Below are positions 31,851 through 54,802 of a stretch of DNA of 64,000 nucleotides, piece by piece. Both the position numbers and the translations under genes were made by a program. The notes below the pieces were generated by a model. That model made no database searches, was not told the origin of the DNA, and saw only the letters and a list, made by a program, of their open reading frames with translations. The stretch lies in the NCBI GenBank assembly GCA_964188305.1, contig OZ076888.1, one strand, 5' to 3'. Positions within the stretch are counted from its first letter, which is position 1. Each line of letters starts with the position of its first letter. Source of the stretch: Podarcis bocagei (taxonomy: Eukaryota).

Positions 31851-31902
31851 AAACAGTCCACAGCACTTTAGATAGCATGGGGTAAAATATGGATATACTT
31901 AC

Positions 31903-32439
31903 TTTGTATGTTTTCTGACACTCTGGCTGCCAACTCATTGTAATCCAGTGCCCCAGCAAATGATCCACTATAGGATCCTCCTGCACCTGTAGACCTCATC
32001 TGTGATCCGCCTGCTCCAGTTGAACTACCGTAAGATCCACCCGCTGCAGCACCGTAAGATCCACCTGCTCCAATCGCTCCGCCATAAGAACCATCAGCTC
32101 CAAGAGATCCACCATAAGAGCCATCAGCTCCAAGAGATCCACCGTATGATCCACCAGCTCCAAGTGATCCACCAGCTCCAAGAGATCCATCAGCTCCAAG
32201 AGATCCACCAGCTCCAAGAGATCCACCATATGCTCCATTGCTTCCCAATGAGCTGCTGTATGATCCCCCTGTGGCAAGTGATGCATCATAGGATGTGGCA
32301 GAACTTACGGACCTACCATACGACCCATCTGAATTTAGAGACCTTCTGTAAGATTCAGCCATCAAGCTGCCATCTCCTCCTATACCAGGTGGTCCTGGAG
32401 GCCCGGGGGGGCCTCTGATGATGCCACGAATATCGTCAC
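31903..32439 (-). CDS. COL17A1: COL17A1 large Gly/Ser-rich exon (537 nt, NC4 region)
   Basis: [18 protein letters not shown]...(GGSLGA/GGSYG)n...LDYNELAARVSENIQ; AG/GT sites. Confidence 0.93.
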
Positions 32440-33322
32440 CTACAAAACACAGCAATGGGTATTAATGGAGCTGCACCAGTTATAATGGAATGTTCTACAG
32501 GGGTGCTGAAGCCAGCAAAGAGTGCTCAGGGACGGCATCCCAGAAGGTCACACAATACATCAGATCTTCTTCAAGGGAGCTCTGATGCTGAATCCTCCTC
32601 CCATCCCCACAACTTCCACAAACCCAGCCCTATCAGTTTTGGAACTCTTGACATCCCAAAACCAAAATGTGTTGGGACGGTTTGGGGGCATGCAGAGGGA
32701 GCAGTGGGATCTGAAGGATCTAGTGCCTTCCCAATTCCACCCATTATTCCTAACAGGAGTGGTTATCCACTGTCAGTTCCACCCACAGGCAAGAACCTGA
32801 TAGTATGTTGATGATATTGATGTAAGCCTCTTTAAGTTTACTGTAGCAGGATGCAATTTTAGTAATTTTAGTAAACTTGGCGCAGCATGGTGCCCCAAAG
32901 AGAACCTGTCTCTGGAAAGCTTTTCATTAAAGCGAGAGGATGCTACTTGAGACCGAGTTGATGGTTAGAGGTTATGCCCTACCAGCTAAGGTGCTATTTT
33001 TTAGACCTTCTGGTTACAGTAAAGGAAGCACAAATTAAAGAACAAGTCTCTTCCATAAATGATACATGTCAAAGATGACCAAACAGAAATAAATCTTAGG
33101 ATCCACCTTAAGACAAAACCATATTCAATACTTTTGATTTCTTGAGGGACTTTTCAGTCCAGGATAGCAGCTGTAGTAAGCATTTCTCAGCTGCTACAAA
33201 AGAGCTATGAGATCAGCCCTAGGCATAGTGCCAGGATGAGGCCCAGACTTGAAATTTCAAGAAGAGCAACAGCCGGTTATAGCAATCAAAATTGTGGAAG
33301 TGGTTTTGCGTGTGTGACTTAC

Positions 33323-44656: not shown

Positions 44657-45997
44657 CCGTATTTTTCGCCCCATAAGACGCACTTTTTCCCCTCCAAAAA
44701 TGAAGGGAAAATCTGGGTGCGTCTTATGGGGCGAATGCAGGCTTTCGCTGAAGCTTGAAGAGCGAGAGGGGTCGGTGCGCACCGACCCCTCTCGCTCTCC
44801 AGGCTTCAGGAAGATATCCGCCGCCCAAGCAGCCCTGTGGGAGGTCCCGCAGGGTTGCCTAGGCTGCGGATAGCAGCCTGCTTCTCGGAGCGTCGGGCGC
44901 CCTGAAGGCAGAGCGCCCGACGCTTCGGGAACCATTCCGCAGCCCAGGCAGCCCTGTGGGAGGTCCCGCAGGGTTGCCTAGGCTGCGGATAGCAGCCTGC
45001 TTCTCGGAGCGTCGGGCGCCCTGAAGGCAGAGCGCCCGACGCTTCGGGAACAATTCCGCCGCCCAGGCAGCCCTGTGGGAGGTCCCACAGGGCTGCCTAG
45101 GCTGCGGATAGCAGCCTGCTTCTCGCAGCGTCGAGCGCCCTGAAGGCAGAGCGCCCGACGCTTCGGGAACCATTCCGCAGCCCAGGCAGCCCTGTGGGAG
45201 GTCCCACAGGGCTGCCTAGGCTGCGGATAGCAGCCTGCTTCTCGGAGCGTCGGGCGCCCTGAAGGCAGAGCGCCCGACGCTTCGGGAACAATTCCGCAGC
45301 CCAGGCAGCCCTGTGGGAGGTCCCACAGGGTTGCCTAGGCTGCGGATAGCAGCCTGCTTCTCGGAGCGTCGGGCGCCCTGAAGGCAGGGTGCGCAAGGCT
45401 TGGGGCGGCAGCGGACTGCTTGCGCGCACCTAGAAGCTTGGGGCGGGCTGAGGTCAGCGCGCCCCAAGCTTCCGCATGCCGGCAAGCAGTCCGCTGCTGC
45501 CCCAAGCCTCCCGCACCCGGCAGGAGGTCCCGCCGGGTGCGGGAGGCTTGGGGCGGCAGCGGACTGCTTGCGCGCACCTAGAAGCTTGGGGCGTGCTGAG
45601 GTCAGCGCGCCCCAAGCTTCTGCATGCCGGCAAGCAGTCCGCTGCCGCCCCAAGCCTCCCGCACCCGGCATTAGGTCCCGCCGGGTGCGCAAGGCTTGGG
45701 GCGGCAGCGGACTGCTTGCCGGCATGCAGAAGCTTGGGGCGCGCTGACCTCAGCACGCCCCAAGCTTCTGGATTAGCGCAGGGGTCCGCTAGCCCTGGGA
45801 GAGGCGCCGGCTCTCCCACGCTAGCGGAGACCTTGCCGGCACGCAGAAGCTTGGGGCGCGCTGAGCTCCGTACGCCCCAAGCTCCTGGTGTAGCGCAGCG
45901 CACCTGGGGGGGAAATAAAAATTTTTTCCTTCATTTCCCCCCCTAAAATCTAGGTGCGTCTTATGGGCCGGTGCGTCTTATGGGGCGAAAAATACGG
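44657..45997. mobile_element. Non-autonomous Tc1/mariner-superfamily (Tc2-like) element with internal tandem and palindromic repeats
   Basis: 27-bp TIR CCGTATTTTTCGCCCCATAAGACGCAC; TA TSD; subterminal GTGCGTCTTATGGG repeats. Confidence 0.88.
44818..45388. repeat. 119-bp GC-rich tandem repeat, ~4.8 copies
   Basis: CTTCTCG(G/C)AGCGTCG recurs at 44881, 45000, 45119, 45238 and 45357. Confidence 0.92.
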
Positions 45998-50011: not shown

Positions 50012-50407
50012 AGGGCACCACAATTCAATAAGGATATTGACAAGCTGTAACGTGTGCAGAAAAGGGTGACCAAGATGATAAAGGGTCTGAAAACCAAGCC
50101 TTATGAGGAACGGCTGAGGGGATTGGGTATGTTTAGGAGAATGAGAGGAGATATGATAGCCATCTTCAAATATTGAAAGGCCTGTCATATGGAGGCTGGA
50201 GCAAGCTTGTTTCCTCCTGCTCCACAGGCTAGGACCCAAACCATTTGGATCAAGTTACAAGAAAGAAGATTCTGACTAAACATCAGGAAGAACTTTCTAA
50301 CAGGAAGAGCTGTTCCACAGTGGAACACAGTCCTACTATCTTCCCTTGGAGGTTTTTAAGCAGAGGTTGGATGGCTATCTGTCACGTATAAATCTAGTTG
50401 AGATTCC
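50012..50407 (+). mobile_element. CR1 LINE 3' fragment, left part (continues at 54425-54488 after the LTR element)
   Basis: Same family as 28872-29155; GAGATTCC|TGCATTGCAG...TTGGACTAGATGA...ATTCTATGA is rejoined when the LTR element is removed. Confidence 0.88.
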
Positions 50408-50877
50408 TGTTACCATAAAGCACCAATGCTGCAGCAAGCAAAGGCTCCAGCAGCTCAGTCAGCTGCTTGTGGCTGGAAAGCCAGACAGGATGTTTGTGAC
50501 TGTTGCCATGGGAACAAAGGGGCAGTCCAATCCGTACTGAGCACCGGATGTTAGCTCAGTGTGTGTGTCATATGACCCGTACTGGAAGTACATGGGTGGA
50601 GTTTCTTCTTGCTGTTGTCGAGTGCAGACGTGTTTCTCTGTACTGATATGAGAGACAGAAATAAAAGATGTAAATAGTTTTCTGTCTGCTTCTTTCCCCT
50701 CCTTGGGGGACACCAAAGGGGAGAGAGGGTGAACGGTGTGTTCCTCTCACACATCTGAGATGAATCGCCGGGACCTCGCCTGCTTATCAGCAGAGTGGAG
50801 ACGCGGGGAGGTCGACGGGAATATCTGCCGGTGCCTACGCTGTGGCACATTCCTCTGACCCAGGCAGAATTCCAATA
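50408..50877 (+). repeat. 5' LTR (470 bp)
   Basis: Direct repeat of 53950-54419; AATAAA at 50660; ends CCAATA. Confidence 0.95.
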
Positions 50878-51426
50878 GTGGCAGCCTTCGGATGGTTGCT
50901 GTTTTCTTCGATCCATCGGACATCTGCATGAGAGGCTGGTGAATTGTCCTCCTCTGCTCCATGGAAGCCTGATGGGAGAGGCTGATTCTCTGCAGCCAGA
51001 AGCTGACCAGAAGAAGCTGACAGCCAAGCCGATGCTCAAGGTATGAGACTTTTAAGGGCTTAAGAGTGTGAATGCAGAATGATTTATTCTCTGCTTCACG
51101 GAGAGCGAGTGTGGGAAAGCAGCTCCAACTTAGAAGAGGCCTGCATACCAGGCATTTTTGTGGTTTCCTGTCCGAGGAAAGGAATGCGCTGTTGCTAAGC
51201 AACGTCCTTCAGAAGGCTGTGCCTCAGAGAGGAGAAATGGAAAGCTACTCGAGAGGGCTGGACAGTCAGACTATGCCTCAGAGAGGCGTAAACAAAGTTT
51301 TGTTATGACTAGGTCCTCACGAACTGCTGGAAGGGACTTTCCAACGCAGCCAGTGTCAGAGTTGCCAGGTGTCCAGAGAGTAAACAAGCCAGCTATTGGA
51401 TTTTAGAGGCTTGTGTTTCAGAGTCA

Positions 51427-54096
51427 ATGCAAGGACTCAAAATGGATGCCAAGAAGGGGGGAGGCTTGCCTTCTCCACCCCTCCTGACCAACAACAATTA
51501 TTCATCTTGGTCTGTAAAGATGAAGGCCCTGCTGCAGAATCAGAGACTGTTTGGGGTGATTGAGAATCCCATCCCAGCAGCACCAACGCGTGCTTGGGAG
51601 TCACAGAATGTGAAGGCTAGGACTGCTATAATTCTGTGTGTCTCAGATGAGCAGCTTGTGCATATACAGCATTTGGAATTTGCGCAAGAGGTTTGGAACG
51701 CGCTGCGTACAACGCATCAGAGAGATGCTGGTTCTTCAGCGTTGCTGTATTTTGAGAAGTTGACCAATCTGAGATTAGCGCCTGATGGAAATGTTCAAGC
51801 GCACCTGACAGAAATGAAGTTCCTGCGTCAACAAATGGTGGAACGCAATTTCCGTCTACAGGAGGAAGTGTTTTGCTTCATGATGATAAACAGCCTGAAC
51901 CGGACCTACAAGGTTGTTGCCAGTCAGCTTGGTTCCCTACCGGCGGCTCAGCAGCTAACCGCGGAAAGGGTGTGTGCTGTGGTCCTGAACGAACACGACA
52001 GACTTGCTGCACTGGAAGTGAAAGACAGAGGGAGGCAAGAACAGAGTTCAAATCTTCCCACTGCTGAATCTACTGGAGAGCATGCCATAGCATTGAGTGC
52101 CGTCCGATGCCACAATTGTGGACAGACTGGGCATCTACAGCGAAATTGTAGGAAGCCGCGACAGTCAAAAGGAGCCAAGAATAGCTCTACGAAGCCTGAG
52201 GCGTCAAGCAAAAGCCGTACCAACTGCCAGGTGAAACCTGCAAAGGTGATGATGGCGAAAGGAACCACGCCAGATGTTGGGAACGCATTTATAATCGATA
52301 CCGGCACCACGAAGCATCTCTGCCCACACAGAGAACTGTTTTCGACGTTGAGGAAGCAAAGCTTCACTGTGAAACAAGCCAACGGTCAAGAACTGGAAGC
52401 GACCGGAATTGGAACTGTGTATCTTGAGAGTCTGAACTTGACTATAAGCGATGTTTACCTGGTTCCAGAACTGAAATTTAGTCTGCTGAGTGCTTCGCAG
52501 ATTGCAAAGAAGGGACTAAAATTGTACTATGATGCTAAAAGATGCAAGATCTACAAAGATGGAGAACTGTTTCTTACTGCCAAAGAGAAAGATGGACTGT
52601 ATTTGTTGACTTTTGATCAAAGTGATTACATGAAATGTAATACTTCTGATTCTAACGAAATTTCTCTTGCAGGTGTGACCAGTGTGAACACCAGGAAGGT
52701 GTCCAAGAAGGTCCACAGAGCTTTTCAGCGGGTGTATGCTGATGTGATTGGTCCTCTAGAACCATCTAGGGGCGGTGCAAAATATTACCTTGTGTGTGTT
52801 GATTGTTACACTAATTATTCTTGGGTTTATATGATGAAGAAACCGCAGGAAACTTTAGAAAAGTTTCAGGAGTTTTGTGACAAGGTTAAAAGTATGCATG
52901 ATGCTAACATTGATTGTCTTTTCACAGATGACAAGCCAGTTTTTCTTTTACAGGATTTCCAGAGGTTCCTGGATGGAAAAGGGATAAGACACAAACTTGC
53001 TAGTTCCGAAGAAGCATGGAAGAAATGTGTCTGTGTTAGGGTGAACAAAGAATTGCAAAAGGGGATGCATGCGCAATTGCTGAGTTCACATTTGCCACAT
53101 GAATATTGGGCCGAATCTCTAGCGTCCTATCTTCACGTGTGGTTGAGAAAAGTCTCAACAGAGTTGGGATGTTCTCCTTTTGAGAAGTTGTTTAATAGAA
53201 AACCTTCTGTTGCCTATTTTAAGGTTTTCGGGTCTCATGTGAGAACAGAAGCTCCAAGTGGGGTAAAGAATGCCAGAGGCATCTTTGTGGGTTATGAAAA
53301 AGGTCTCTATAGAGTAATTTTGTCTGAATCTGATCAGGTGATTCTCACAAAGTTTCTAGAGAGTGCTCCTGAACAGGAGAGAGTGATTGTTCACACTTTT
53401 TCCACAGATGATTCTGATGATGATGAGTTTGATCTTATGGAGTTCAGTGGTACTGATGATGATGACACTGATAGCTCAGACAGCTCAGTTGTCACAGTCA
53501 TTGAGAGGAAATCTCAAATAATGACTAAACCCTCAGAAAAGGAGGATAAACCACTGATAAAGCTTAGTACTGGTTCTCCAGAGAGTTCAGAGGCTGAACC
53601 AGAAAGCAGGGAAGAGCAGCAGCTCTTACGTAGGTCTGAGAGAGCAACAAAGGGTGTACCACCCAAGAGGTATTCAAAGGAGTTTGCTAACCTTGCATAT
53701 GTTGCTGTTGTAAACGATCAAGGACAGATTGAAGCTGTGTCTGAGTCAGAGACAAAGGCACAACAGAGAGTTGTTAACCAAGGAAATGCGAAGTCACACA
53801 ACCAGAGAGGTACATTGGTTAAACCAGTGGCGGGTAGTTCCAAGGGTGGAACTGAAACAACAGGGGAGTGTTATAAGTATAACAACTGTTTGTTTTCTTC
53901 TCTGGATGACGCTTTGCTCGCAGCACGCATTGATACTTTAGGGGGAGTATGTTACCATAAAGCACCAATGCTGCAGCAAGCAAAGGCTCCAGCAGCTCAG
54001 TCAGCTGCTTGTGGCTGGAAAGCCAGACAGGATGTTTGTGACTGTTGCCATGGGAACAAAGGGGCAGTCCAATCCGTACTGAGCACCGGATGTTAG
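51427..54096 (+). CDS. Copia-type Gag-protease-degenerate integrase polyprotein, 889 aa
   Basis: Copia Gag N-terminus (NYSSWSVKMKALL); CCHC knuckle CHNCGQTGHLQRNC (52108); aspartyl protease IIDTGTTKHLC (52297); integrase core VYADVIGP..YYLVCVDCYTNYSWVY; LRRSER..PPKRY motif; stop lies inside the 3' LTR. Confidence 0.9.
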   Translation: MQGLKMDAKKGGGLPSPPLLTNNNYSSWSVKMKALLQNQRLFGVIENPIPAAPTRAWESQNVKARTAIILCVSDEQLVHIQHLEFAQEVWNALRTTHQRDAGSSALLYFEKLTNLRLAPDGNVQAHLTEMKFLRQQMVERNFRLQEEVFCFMMINSLNRTYKVVASQLGSLPAAQQLTAERVCAVVLNEHDRLAALEVKDRGRQEQSSNLPTAESTGEHAIALSAVRCHNCGQTGHLQRNCRKPRQSKGAKNSSTKPEASSKSRTNCQVKPAKVMMAKGTTPDVGNAFIIDTGTTKHLCPHRELFSTLRKQSFTVKQANGQELEATGIGTVYLESLNLTISDVYLVPELKFSLLSASQIAKKGLKLYYDAKRCKIYKDGELFLTAKEKDGLYLLTFDQSDYMKCNTSDSNEISLAGVTSVNTRKVSKKVHRAFQRVYADVIGPLEPSRGGAKYYLVCVDCYTNYSWVYMMKKPQETLEKFQEFCDKVKSMHDANIDCLFTDDKPVFLLQDFQRFLDGKGIRHKLASSEEAWKKCVCVRVNKELQKGMHAQLLSSHLPHEYWAESLASYLHVWLRKVSTELGCSPFEKLFNRKPSVAYFKVFGSHVRTEAPSGVKNARGIFVGYEKGLYRVILSESDQVILTKFLESAPEQERVIVHTFSTDDSDDDEFDLMEFSGTDDDDTDSSDSSVVTVIERKSQIMTKPSEKEDKPLIKLSTGSPESSEAEPESREEQQLLRRSERATKGVPPKRYSKEFANLAYVAVVNDQGQIEAVSESETKAQQRVVNQGNAKSHNQRGTLVKPVAGSSKGGTETTGECYKYNNCLFSSLDDALLAARIDTLGGVCYHKAPMLQQAKAPAAQSAACGWKARQDVCDCCHGNKGAVQSVLSTGC

Positions 54097-54419
54097 CTCA
54101 GTGTGTGTGTCATATGACCCGTACTGGAAGTACATGGGTGGAGTTTCTTCTTGCTGTTGTCGAGTGCAGACGTGTTTCTCTGTACTGATATGAGAGACAG
54201 AAATAAAAGATGTAAATAGTTTTCTGTCTGCTTCTTTCCCCTCCTTGGGGGACACCAAAGGGGAGAGAGGGTGAACGGTGTGTTCCTCTCACACATCTGA
54301 GATGAATCGCCGGGACCTCGCCTGCTTATCAGCAGAGTGGAGACGCGGGGAGGTCGACGGGAATATCTGCCGGTGCCTACGCTGTGGCACATTCCTCTGA
54401 CCCAGGCAGAATTCCAACA
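53950..54419 (+). repeat. 3' LTR (470 bp)
   Basis: Identical by eye to the 5' LTR except the penultimate base (CCAACA); AATAAA at 54202. Confidence 0.95.
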
Positions 54420-54802
54420 ATTCCTGCATTGCAGTATGTTGGACTAGATGATCCTCAGGATCCCTCCCAACTCTACAATTCTATGAGATGCAGTTGCTTG
54501 CTTGCATATTAATGCCATTTATATTCTGCTTTTAGGGCATAGCCCTCACAAGGCAATGTACAACTAAAGAAGATCCAATTAAGATAACATGCAAAGGTAA
54601 CCTCTAATTATGTGGTAATCCCAGAATTACCAGGCTCACCACTTATCTAAATTTCCATAGCCAGGTATGACAGGAGACCAGTTCTCCATGTGGTTACATC
54701 TGCCACACTGTAAATGACAACTGTGCATTAAGTAGTTATTGTTTCCCACTAAAATGAACCTTCATTATCTGCTGCACCAAATTCAGCATTTTTCAGTGTT
54801 TA

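Follow-up and report, generated by a model that had tools for sequence, protein, structure and literature searches.

The stretch of DNA analysed here, hereafter called the window, comprises 64,000 nucleotides of contig OZ076888.1 from Podarcis bocagei (GenBank assembly GCA_964188305.1). At positions 50408-54419 its plus strand carries a 4012 bp long terminal repeat (LTR) retroelement without a recognisable reverse transcriptase (RT). A preliminary description had presented this element as a very recent insertion, with LTRs matching at 469 of 470 nt, a perfect target site duplication (TSD), and a single open reading frame (ORF) of 889 amino acids (aa) containing Gag, a CCHC knuckle and a DTG protease (PR). 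All of these points were borne out by the LTR comparison, the ATTCC flanks, and the ORF and its Pfam matches. The sole difference between the two LTRs is the penultimate base (T versus C). Both start with TGTTACC and end in CCAACA, and the element thereby has the TG...CA termini and the 5-bp TSD of Ty1/copia elements. The ORF is uninterrupted until its stop codon, 147 nt inside the 3′ LTR. An exact-match protein look-up with the 889-aa ORF returned no identical entry, and no further copies of the LTR start were found elsewhere in the 64-kb window. The element is laid out as follows.

50403-50407, plus strand: 5′ copy of the TSD, ATTCC, identical to 54420-54424 and abutting the LTR end
50408-50877, plus strand: 5′ LTR, 470 nt, starting with TGTTACC and ending in TTCCAATA
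50878-51426, plus strand: untranslated leader, 549 nt, from the LTR end to the first ATG of the long ORF
50879-50921, plus strand: damaged primer-binding region for the 3′ end of initiator tRNA-Met, from alignment with the Podarcis lilfordi and Zootoca copies described below
51427-54096, plus strand: single 889-aa ORF with Gag, CCHC knuckle, protease, pseudo-integrase, linker and RNase H relic
51484-52005, plus strand: Gag (DUF4219 and Retrotran_gag_2), aa 20-193, Pfam E = 4.5e-22
52105-52155, plus strand: CCHC zinc knuckle, aa 227-243, Pfam zf-CCHC at 24.8 bits, over threshold
52288-52515, plus strand: aspartic protease (Pol_BBD), aa 288-363, with D291-T-G, Pfam E = 1.8e-18
52705-53349, plus strand: putative pseudo-integrase, core fold and SH3-like C-terminal domain, aa 427-641, from rve, AlphaFold2 and Foldseek
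53377-53616, plus strand: acidic, Ser-rich linker, aa 651-730, evolving nearly neutrally
53623-53691, plus strand: integrase (IN)/RT junction motif LLRRSER..GVPPKRYSKEFAN, aa 733-755, common to all three RT-less lineages in alignments
53755-53931, plus strand: tether and N-terminal relic of RNase H (RH), aa 777-835, without catalytic residues, from local alignments to autonomous element P0163 and to P. muralis element A
53940-53947, plus strand: polypurine tract (PPT) AGGGGGAG, 2 nt upstream of the 3′ LTR
53950-54419, plus strand: 3′ LTR, 470 nt, ending in TTCCAACA
54420-54424, plus strand: 3′ copy of the TSD, ATTCC, completing a perfect 5-bp duplication

Coding capacity of the element

In Pfam searches the Retrotran_gag_2 match scored 78.7 bits and the Pol_BBD protease match, which contains IIDTGT, 67 bits; both Gag and protease are of copia type. 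The preliminary description had expected profile searches to find Retrotran_gag_2, zf-CCHC and rve, but not RVT_2. The first two are indeed present and RVT_2 gave no match in the ORF at E up to 1. A match to rve was also obtained (aa 430-525), but at 25.6 bits it lies below the 32.6 bits that Pfam requires. The SH3_retrovirus match (aa 589-641) is weak, and gag_pre-integrs gave no Pfam match in the ORF. The claim that the element has neither an RT core nor RNase H likewise stands, RVT_2 being unmatched and RNase H being represented by a relic that lacks the catalytic residues. The integrase-like region follows the protease and precedes the junction motif and the RNase H relic, an order that is collinear with full-length relatives (PR-IN-RT-RH). 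Judged by its Gag and protease type, domain order, LTR ends and TSD, the element is assigned to the Ty1/copia superfamily. With no RVT_2, no working RNase H, no HHCC and no D,D,E triad, it does not have the makings of an autonomous copia element.

The C-terminal tail required a different interpretation from the one first given. The motifs quoted for this region (LRRSER..PPKRY, IEAV, TLVKPVAG and YKY) are all found in the ORF; however, the sequence after PPKRY, which had been taken for a relic of the RT N-terminus, is instead placed on the tether and RNase H N-terminus by shuffle-controlled alignments and hhalign. Residues 777-826 are collinear with the tether and first RNase H strands of autonomous relatives by local alignment and by hhalign, which selects the same segment at low probability. 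The alignments of the tail to P0163 and to P. muralis element A exceed all 200 shuffles. Within it, the segment GTETTGECYKYNNCLFSSL is identical to residues 1215-1233 of element A at 13 of 19 positions and scores 70, against a shuffle maximum of 45 (0/200 shuffles reach 70). Differences in this segment fall at synonymous third positions, which indicates conservation at the protein level. The relic is ~50 aa long and does not keep the catalytic Asp. Since the tail aligns to the tether and RNase H N-terminus, what the deletion removed was RT proper and most of RNase H. A MAFFT placement of the tail on the RT motifs D.CLY and YVDD was also considered, and was rejected in favour of the profile and shuffle-controlled local alignments.

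Related copies, selection and the inactive integrase

Four copies share the same collinear architecture, namely that in the window and one each from P. lilfordi, P. muralis and Zootoca vivipara, with identities of 39-90%. The sister copy from P. lilfordi (locus L010, 4140-8179), on another chromosome, is 90% identical to the window element at the nucleotide level, with no large gaps; its LTR pair has 2 mismatches in 458 nt, and single nucleotides have been lost from it at four places. A decayed P. muralis copy (locus L009, 5431-6927, minus strand) has 58% aa identity and the same pseudo-integrase. The Zootoca element is 3.5 kb long and lies in an intron of FAM168A (locus L001). Its LTRs of 290 nt are identical at 289/290 positions, and its 869-aa ORF, which likewise extends into the 3′ LTR, aligns collinearly with that of the window from end to end, tail included, at 39% aa identity. 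Further P. lilfordi protein fragments of the family are located on at least three chromosomes. Named matches in the protein searches were confined to lacertid lizards, and a second, word-based protein search with residues 420-846 added no species. The architecture thus recurs in three independent chromosome-level assemblies (that of the window, GCA_963506605.1 and GCA_947686815.1). The preliminary description had proposed a multi-copy RT-less family, and had named a unique copy with near-identical full-length relatives as the finding that would speak against it. The same deletion architecture does recur outside this locus and outside this species (90%, 58% and 39% identity), and the protein searches found no near-identical full-length relative of the window copy. 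The LTR pairs within each young copy are 99-100% identical, whereas LTRs of different copies differ by 6-20%, which is the pattern left by reverse transcription and not by cut-and-paste movement.

The surroundings of these copies are of some interest in themselves. Locus L009 (P. muralis OZ076972.1, 42 kb) is a copia "nest", to which four sublineages contribute at least seven copia-derived units. The intact autonomous element A lies within the leader of element B, and B in turn abuts the decayed copy of the window family; the gene model LOC144324910 is stitched together from copia pieces of this locus. Four retrieved proteins (P0001, P0002, P0003 and P0164) are annotated as host genes ("vomeronasal type-2 receptor 26-like", "FAM168A isoform X1" and an uncharacterised LOC). 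Two of these models are chimeras with real exons of vomeronasal type-2 receptor (V2R) genes, which indicates that the copies sit in or near V2R gene clusters. Directly after the 3′ LTR of the Zootoca element (L001 12855-12899) there is a ~45-nt second, slightly different primer-site and leader fragment, with no target duplication, which suggests recombination with, or insertion beside, an older truncated copy.

Selection was assessed mainly by comparing the window copy with the 90%-identical L010 copy, domain by domain, as the ratio of nonsynonymous to synonymous differences per site (pN/pS). The ratio is 0.33 for the whole ORF (p = 4e-18), 0.22 for gag (p = 8e-12), 0.24 for the protease (p = 2e-6) and 0.35 for the pseudo-integrase (p = 1.5e-5). 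It is 0.86 for the acidic linker, which is not significant, and 0.49 for the tail, again not significant, there being few changes. The linker is also the least conserved region between the window and Zootoca elements (32%). Across the whole ORF these two differ by pN 0.38 versus pS 0.72; synonymous sites are saturated and dN/dS from this pair is unreliable, which is why the L010 comparison was used instead. As the LTRs of L010 have diverged by just 0.4%, most of the divergence between the two ORFs (dS 0.21) arose while the lineages were replicating. The gag, protease and pseudo-integrase regions are under purifying selection. The constraint on gag and protease that had been anticipated was therefore found. 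With ratios of 0.22-0.35 against the sister copy, and with the architecture shared by copies that are 39-90% identical, the earlier suggestion of a long-lived RT-less lineage is strongly supported, its frame having stayed open under selection.

The ~70-aa HHCC portion is missing from the window copy, from P. lilfordi protein P0001 and from the Zootoca element in alignments, and by BLAST also from the decayed P. muralis copy, in which no more than a CxxC remnant is left. The catalytic triad of the window copy reads D, D, V, and Val replaces the catalytic Glu in all four copies; the D(R/K)GGEF motif is lost in the window clade, and the Zootoca element has lost the first catalytic Asp as well. 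Conservation of the region nevertheless equals that of gag and protease, the window and Zootoca copies being 44% identical (pN 0.37 versus pS 0.70). An AlphaFold2 model of residues 427-655, built from an input alignment dominated by intact integrases, has a mean pLDDT of 87.7, and Foldseek matched it to the two-domain integrases of the retroviruses prototype foamy virus (PFV) and Rous sarcoma virus (RSV) at E ~1e-13. From the model and the alignments, the domain is predicted to be catalytically dead with its fold kept. Its role is probably structural, in precursor folding, in particle assembly or in docking of a helper Pol.

Loss of RT is not peculiar to the window family. P0008, from five short-read assemblies, is an 845-aa Gag-PR-IN ORF with HHCC and DDE intact and no RT. 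One P0008 unitig joins up with itself end to end, the period being 3736 nt, and P0008 is 67% identical to the full-length, 1338-aa element P0163, relative to which ~1.46 kb of RT-RH is missing. In P. muralis, element C (3581 bp, LTRs identical at 404/408 positions, TSD TGCTT) has a 926-aa ORF and element D one of 945 aa, both without RVT_2. These two keep HHCC and an intact DDE triad, their dN/dS is 0.30 at dS 0.72, and their nearest relatives, P0014 and P0013, carry RT. These other lineages come from GCA_964188315.1 and from short-read unitigs of five runs. In a tree obtained by a "quick" IQ-TREE maximum-likelihood run, with SH-aLRT support only and composition warnings for several rows, there are three separate RT-less groups, each with RT-bearing sisters at 100% support, and the window clade lies inside a 100%-supported clade with the autonomous elements that are candidate helpers. 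All three groups keep the integrase region and the junction RRS.R..PP.R(Y/F). Independent origins are also indicated by the deletion breakpoints, which differ among the groups, and by the 67% identity of P0008 to full-length P0163. By these sequence comparisons, at least three separate losses of RT, each with Gag-PR-IN retained, took place in this copia group, and the window element is not unique in this respect.

Enzyme supply and alternative explanations

The primer-binding site (PBS) assignments are predictions from the sequence of initiator tRNA-Met (tRNA-iMet); neither the window nor the retrieved loci gave an ARAGORN tRNA gene that could serve for comparison. The uninterrupted match to the tRNA 3′ end is 23 nt in L010 and 18 nt in the Zootoca element. 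The window PBS is damaged by substitutions at 50882 and 50886-50889 and by a 10-nt insertion at 50898-50907. In comparison with L010 4608-4650, window 50879-50921 shows T>C, AGA>CTTC, and the 10-nt insertion right after nucleotide 18 of the tRNA match. At this position the Zootoca element also has 10 nt inserted, but not the same ones. The position corresponds to the end of plus-strand strong-stop synthesis on the tRNA and may be a hot spot for strand-transfer errors.

As in the window element, a PPT of GGGGGAG or GGGGAG precedes the 3′ LTR in the Zootoca element, P. muralis elements A and B, and P0163. The LTRs of the window element, the Zootoca element, A and B start with TGTTA(C/G)(C/G)ATA and end in T(T/C)CCAACA, and over ~19 nt the window element resembles A and B at its U5 end. 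This one well-supported copia clade uses tRNA-iMet in two ways. The window family and P0163 match its 3′ end over 18-23 nt, whereas A, B, the P. lilfordi element L011, P0008, C and D match the anticodon stem-loop over 13-14 nt (GGTTATGGGCCCAG). Drosophila copia also primes at the tRNA-iMet anticodon stem. In addition, the U5 of element B (L009 7241-7264) contains ~15 nt identical in sense to the T-arm of tRNA-iMet (GAGGTCGATGGATCG), and a diverged version lies in the window LTR at ~50815-50835. Base pairing of such a stretch with a box that lies downstream of the PBS and is complementary to the tRNA could give a U5-leader stem.

We think it likely that the window holds a young insertion of an old, multi-copy, non-autonomous Ty1/copia lineage of lacertid lizards that is mobilised by a helper. 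According to this explanation, the lineage would have lost RT and most of RNase H, and then the zinc-finger part and catalytic Glu of its integrase, while keeping one ORF for Gag, the CCHC knuckle, protease, an inactive integrase-shaped domain and a short RNase H relic. Its RNA would be packaged by its own Gag, or in mixed particles, reverse transcribed from the tRNA-iMet primer by RT and RNase H supplied in trans, and integrated by an integrase that an autonomous copia of the same lizard clade likewise supplies in trans. The presumed enzyme source is those clade relatives that share the LTR termini TGTTA...CCAACA, the GGGGGAG PPT and tRNA-iMet priming. Selection would act on the ORF if the copies that make working Gag, protease and a folded integrase-like module are the ones that are copied; their own Gag and protease would favour packaging and maturation of their own RNA, and the RNase H-derived peptide and pseudo-integrase could have a structural or docking role.

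There are two young candidate helpers in Podarcis. In P. muralis element A, the Gag-PR-IN-RT ORF of 1366 aa is intact, and the two LTRs show 100% identity across the 300 nt reported. The second, L011 of P. lilfordi, also bears RT; it measures 4948 bp and has 376-nt LTRs that are 100% identical and the TSD AAGTG. The autonomous element P0163, with its PBS for the tRNA-iMet 3′ end, is a further candidate.

Several points weigh against helper mobilisation as we have described it. The damage to its PBS may leave the window copy unable to prime further rounds, and thus a dead end. Helper-supplied RT and IN are a necessary assumption of this explanation, and the helpers themselves are candidates. 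An autonomous copia with matching LTR ends, PBS and PPT had been predicted to exist, and relatives with similar LTR ends and PPT were found. However, none of the autonomous elements found is close to the window clade; protein identity to the best RT-bearing relatives is just ~27-33%, a level that makes co-assembly of Gag with that of a helper uncertain. The autonomous Podarcis elements also use the anticodon-stem ("half-tRNA") iMet site, unlike the 3′-end type of the window family, and L011 has two frame breaks in its integrase region. The primer-site difference and the low protein identity keep the true helper at candidate level. Moreover, copy number and helper census rest on ~100 kb of lizard DNA outside the window and are incomplete.

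A more specific possibility, which we hold only tentatively and consider rather unlikely, is that RT loss with Gag-PR-IN kept, which would have three independent origins in lizard copia, is both recurrent and favoured by selection, and that in the oldest lineage the dead integrase and the conserved RNase H peptide act as an adaptor that docks helper Pol, or titrates and restrains it. Docking would proceed through IN-IN or IN-RT contacts into the parasite's own particles. If true, this would be a protein-level satellite-helper system in a vertebrate genome; interference with the helper, in particular, is pure speculation.

Somewhat less probable again is that the enzymes come from an RT source outside this clade, be it a distant copia, a different LTR superfamily or a LINE. 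The ~30% protein identity of the nearest RT-bearing elements and the failure to find a close autonomous partner would fit such a source, and in plants many non-autonomous families are reported to have no partner that can be recognised (PMC13570524). Nevertheless, the tRNA-iMet priming, PPT and LTR termini, which are signals that RT/RNase H and integrase must recognise, are of the lizard copia clade type, and young RT-bearing members of that clade are present in the same genomes.

Two further explanations seem to us very improbable. One is that the ORF is a domesticated host gene derived from copia gag-pro-int and no longer a mobile element. Domesticated transposon genes typically have a long open frame, purifying selection and an inactivated enzyme domain, and gene models have been called on several copies. 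The LTRs of the window element, however, are intact and almost identical, and it has a 5-bp TSD together with PBS and PPT. Each genome contains several copies that are not orthologous to one another, every one of them flanked by a young LTR pair, and the Zootoca copy lies in a FAM168A intron, the gene names being annotation chimeras. The other, to which we give just as little credence, is that the RT-less elements transpose at the DNA level, their integrase serving as transposase, and need no RT. Two of the three RT-less lineages (P0008, and P. muralis C and D) do keep HHCC and the DDE triad, and DNA transposons derived from integrase (Ginger) exist (PMC2836005). Against it, the window clade is without the catalytic Glu and the zinc-finger part, LTR identity is high within young copies and lower between them, and PBS and PPT are conserved.

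Still less credible is a post-insertion internal deletion of one full-length copia that left a unique dead copy. Internal deletions are common in LTR elements, and the window tail does keep short relics of the deleted region, but the same junctions and pseudo-integrase occur at the other loci and in the other species, purifying selection acts on the open ORF, and the protein searches gave no full-length relative that is near-identical; the existence of independent copies refutes this explanation. The chance that an assembly collapse or chimera removed the RT region is negligible: LTR elements are prone to mis-assembly, but the architecture is the same in three independent chromosome-level assemblies, RT-less lineages also occur in other data, and the reading frame is continuous across the junctions.

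Elsewhere in the window, positions 44803-45770 are occupied by two adjoining GC-rich tandem arrays (119 nt x 4.9 and 148 nt x 2.6 copies, 92-95% matches), which contain spurious ORFs of some length in both directions. At 31868-32455 on the minus strand there is a repetitive ORF of 195 aa rich in Gly, Ser and Tyr, with GGSYGGSLGA repeats and tandem units of 18 nt and 30 nt; it may belong to a structural gene, keratin-associated or collagen-like, as one of its exons. A highly acidic, Glu/Lys/Ser/Asp-rich open frame of 340 aa at 254-1276 is probably a large exon of a host gene. No Pfam match was obtained in three other long ORFs of the window, these two frames included.

Comparison with known systems

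Non-autonomous LTR elements are usually viewed as decaying shells, and coding-capable ones are known mainly from plants. The lizard family is the opposite of a decaying shell, in a vertebrate: its polymerase is gone, and its capsid, protease and dead integrase have been selected through divergence down to 39% identity. Such families tell the retroelement proteins that are required in cis from those that another element can supply, offer natural "separation-of-function" variants of the copia polyprotein, and provide a tractable case for parasite-of-parasite dynamics in squamate genomes in which copia is still active. There is also a practical aspect, in that such ORFs are being annotated as host genes (a FAM168A isoform, a vomeronasal receptor).

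Among vertebrate LTR elements, mouse intracisternal A particle (IAP) I-delta-1 and ETn/MusD carry internal deletions and are highly active via trans-complementation by full-length relatives. They derive from class II endogenous retroviruses, are young, and are close in sequence to their helpers. The window lineage, by comparison, is Ty1/copia and old (39% aa identity between members), with no close helper found. For the idea of interference, the model is Ty1 p22, a Gag fragment of an autonomous element that serves in yeast copy-number control. As with p22, a truncated protein of the window element could act on related particles, but p22 does not come from a separate non-autonomous lineage.

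The plant TR-GAG elements are likewise non-autonomous LTR elements with an open capsid gene; they are thought to be trans-mobilised and have been called "semi-autonomous" (PMC13570524). They are known from plants and keep GAG or GAG/PROT alone, whereas the window element adds the protease, a 230-aa integrase fold and an RNase H relic, and has a vertebrate host. It is not itself a TR-GAG, in which GAG is the sole coding domain, as it retains a protease and an integrase fold under selection. In barley, BARE-2 is also a copia-type non-autonomous parasite of a related autonomous element, BARE-1, with which it shares cis signals (cited in PMC13570524). BARE-2 is without a working Gag, borrows its capsid and keeps pol; the window element is the reverse, with capsid and protease kept and polymerase lost.

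In squamates, autonomous copia elements are documented, and the amel allele of OCA2 in the corn snake is a 5.8-kb copia insertion (PMC4657000). These elements belong to the same superfamily, with the same Gag and protease families, 5-bp TSD and recent activity, but they have RT and RNase H, which are absent from the window element. We found no description in the literature of RT-less copia in lizards or squamates, or of a conserved Gag-PR-(pseudo)IN ORF in vertebrates; as most subscription journals and Repbase lay outside the search, this is weak evidence. Non-autonomous LTR elements with partial coding capacity were thus already known, and the RT-less Gag-PR-pseudo-integrase copia of a vertebrate is a new variation on them.

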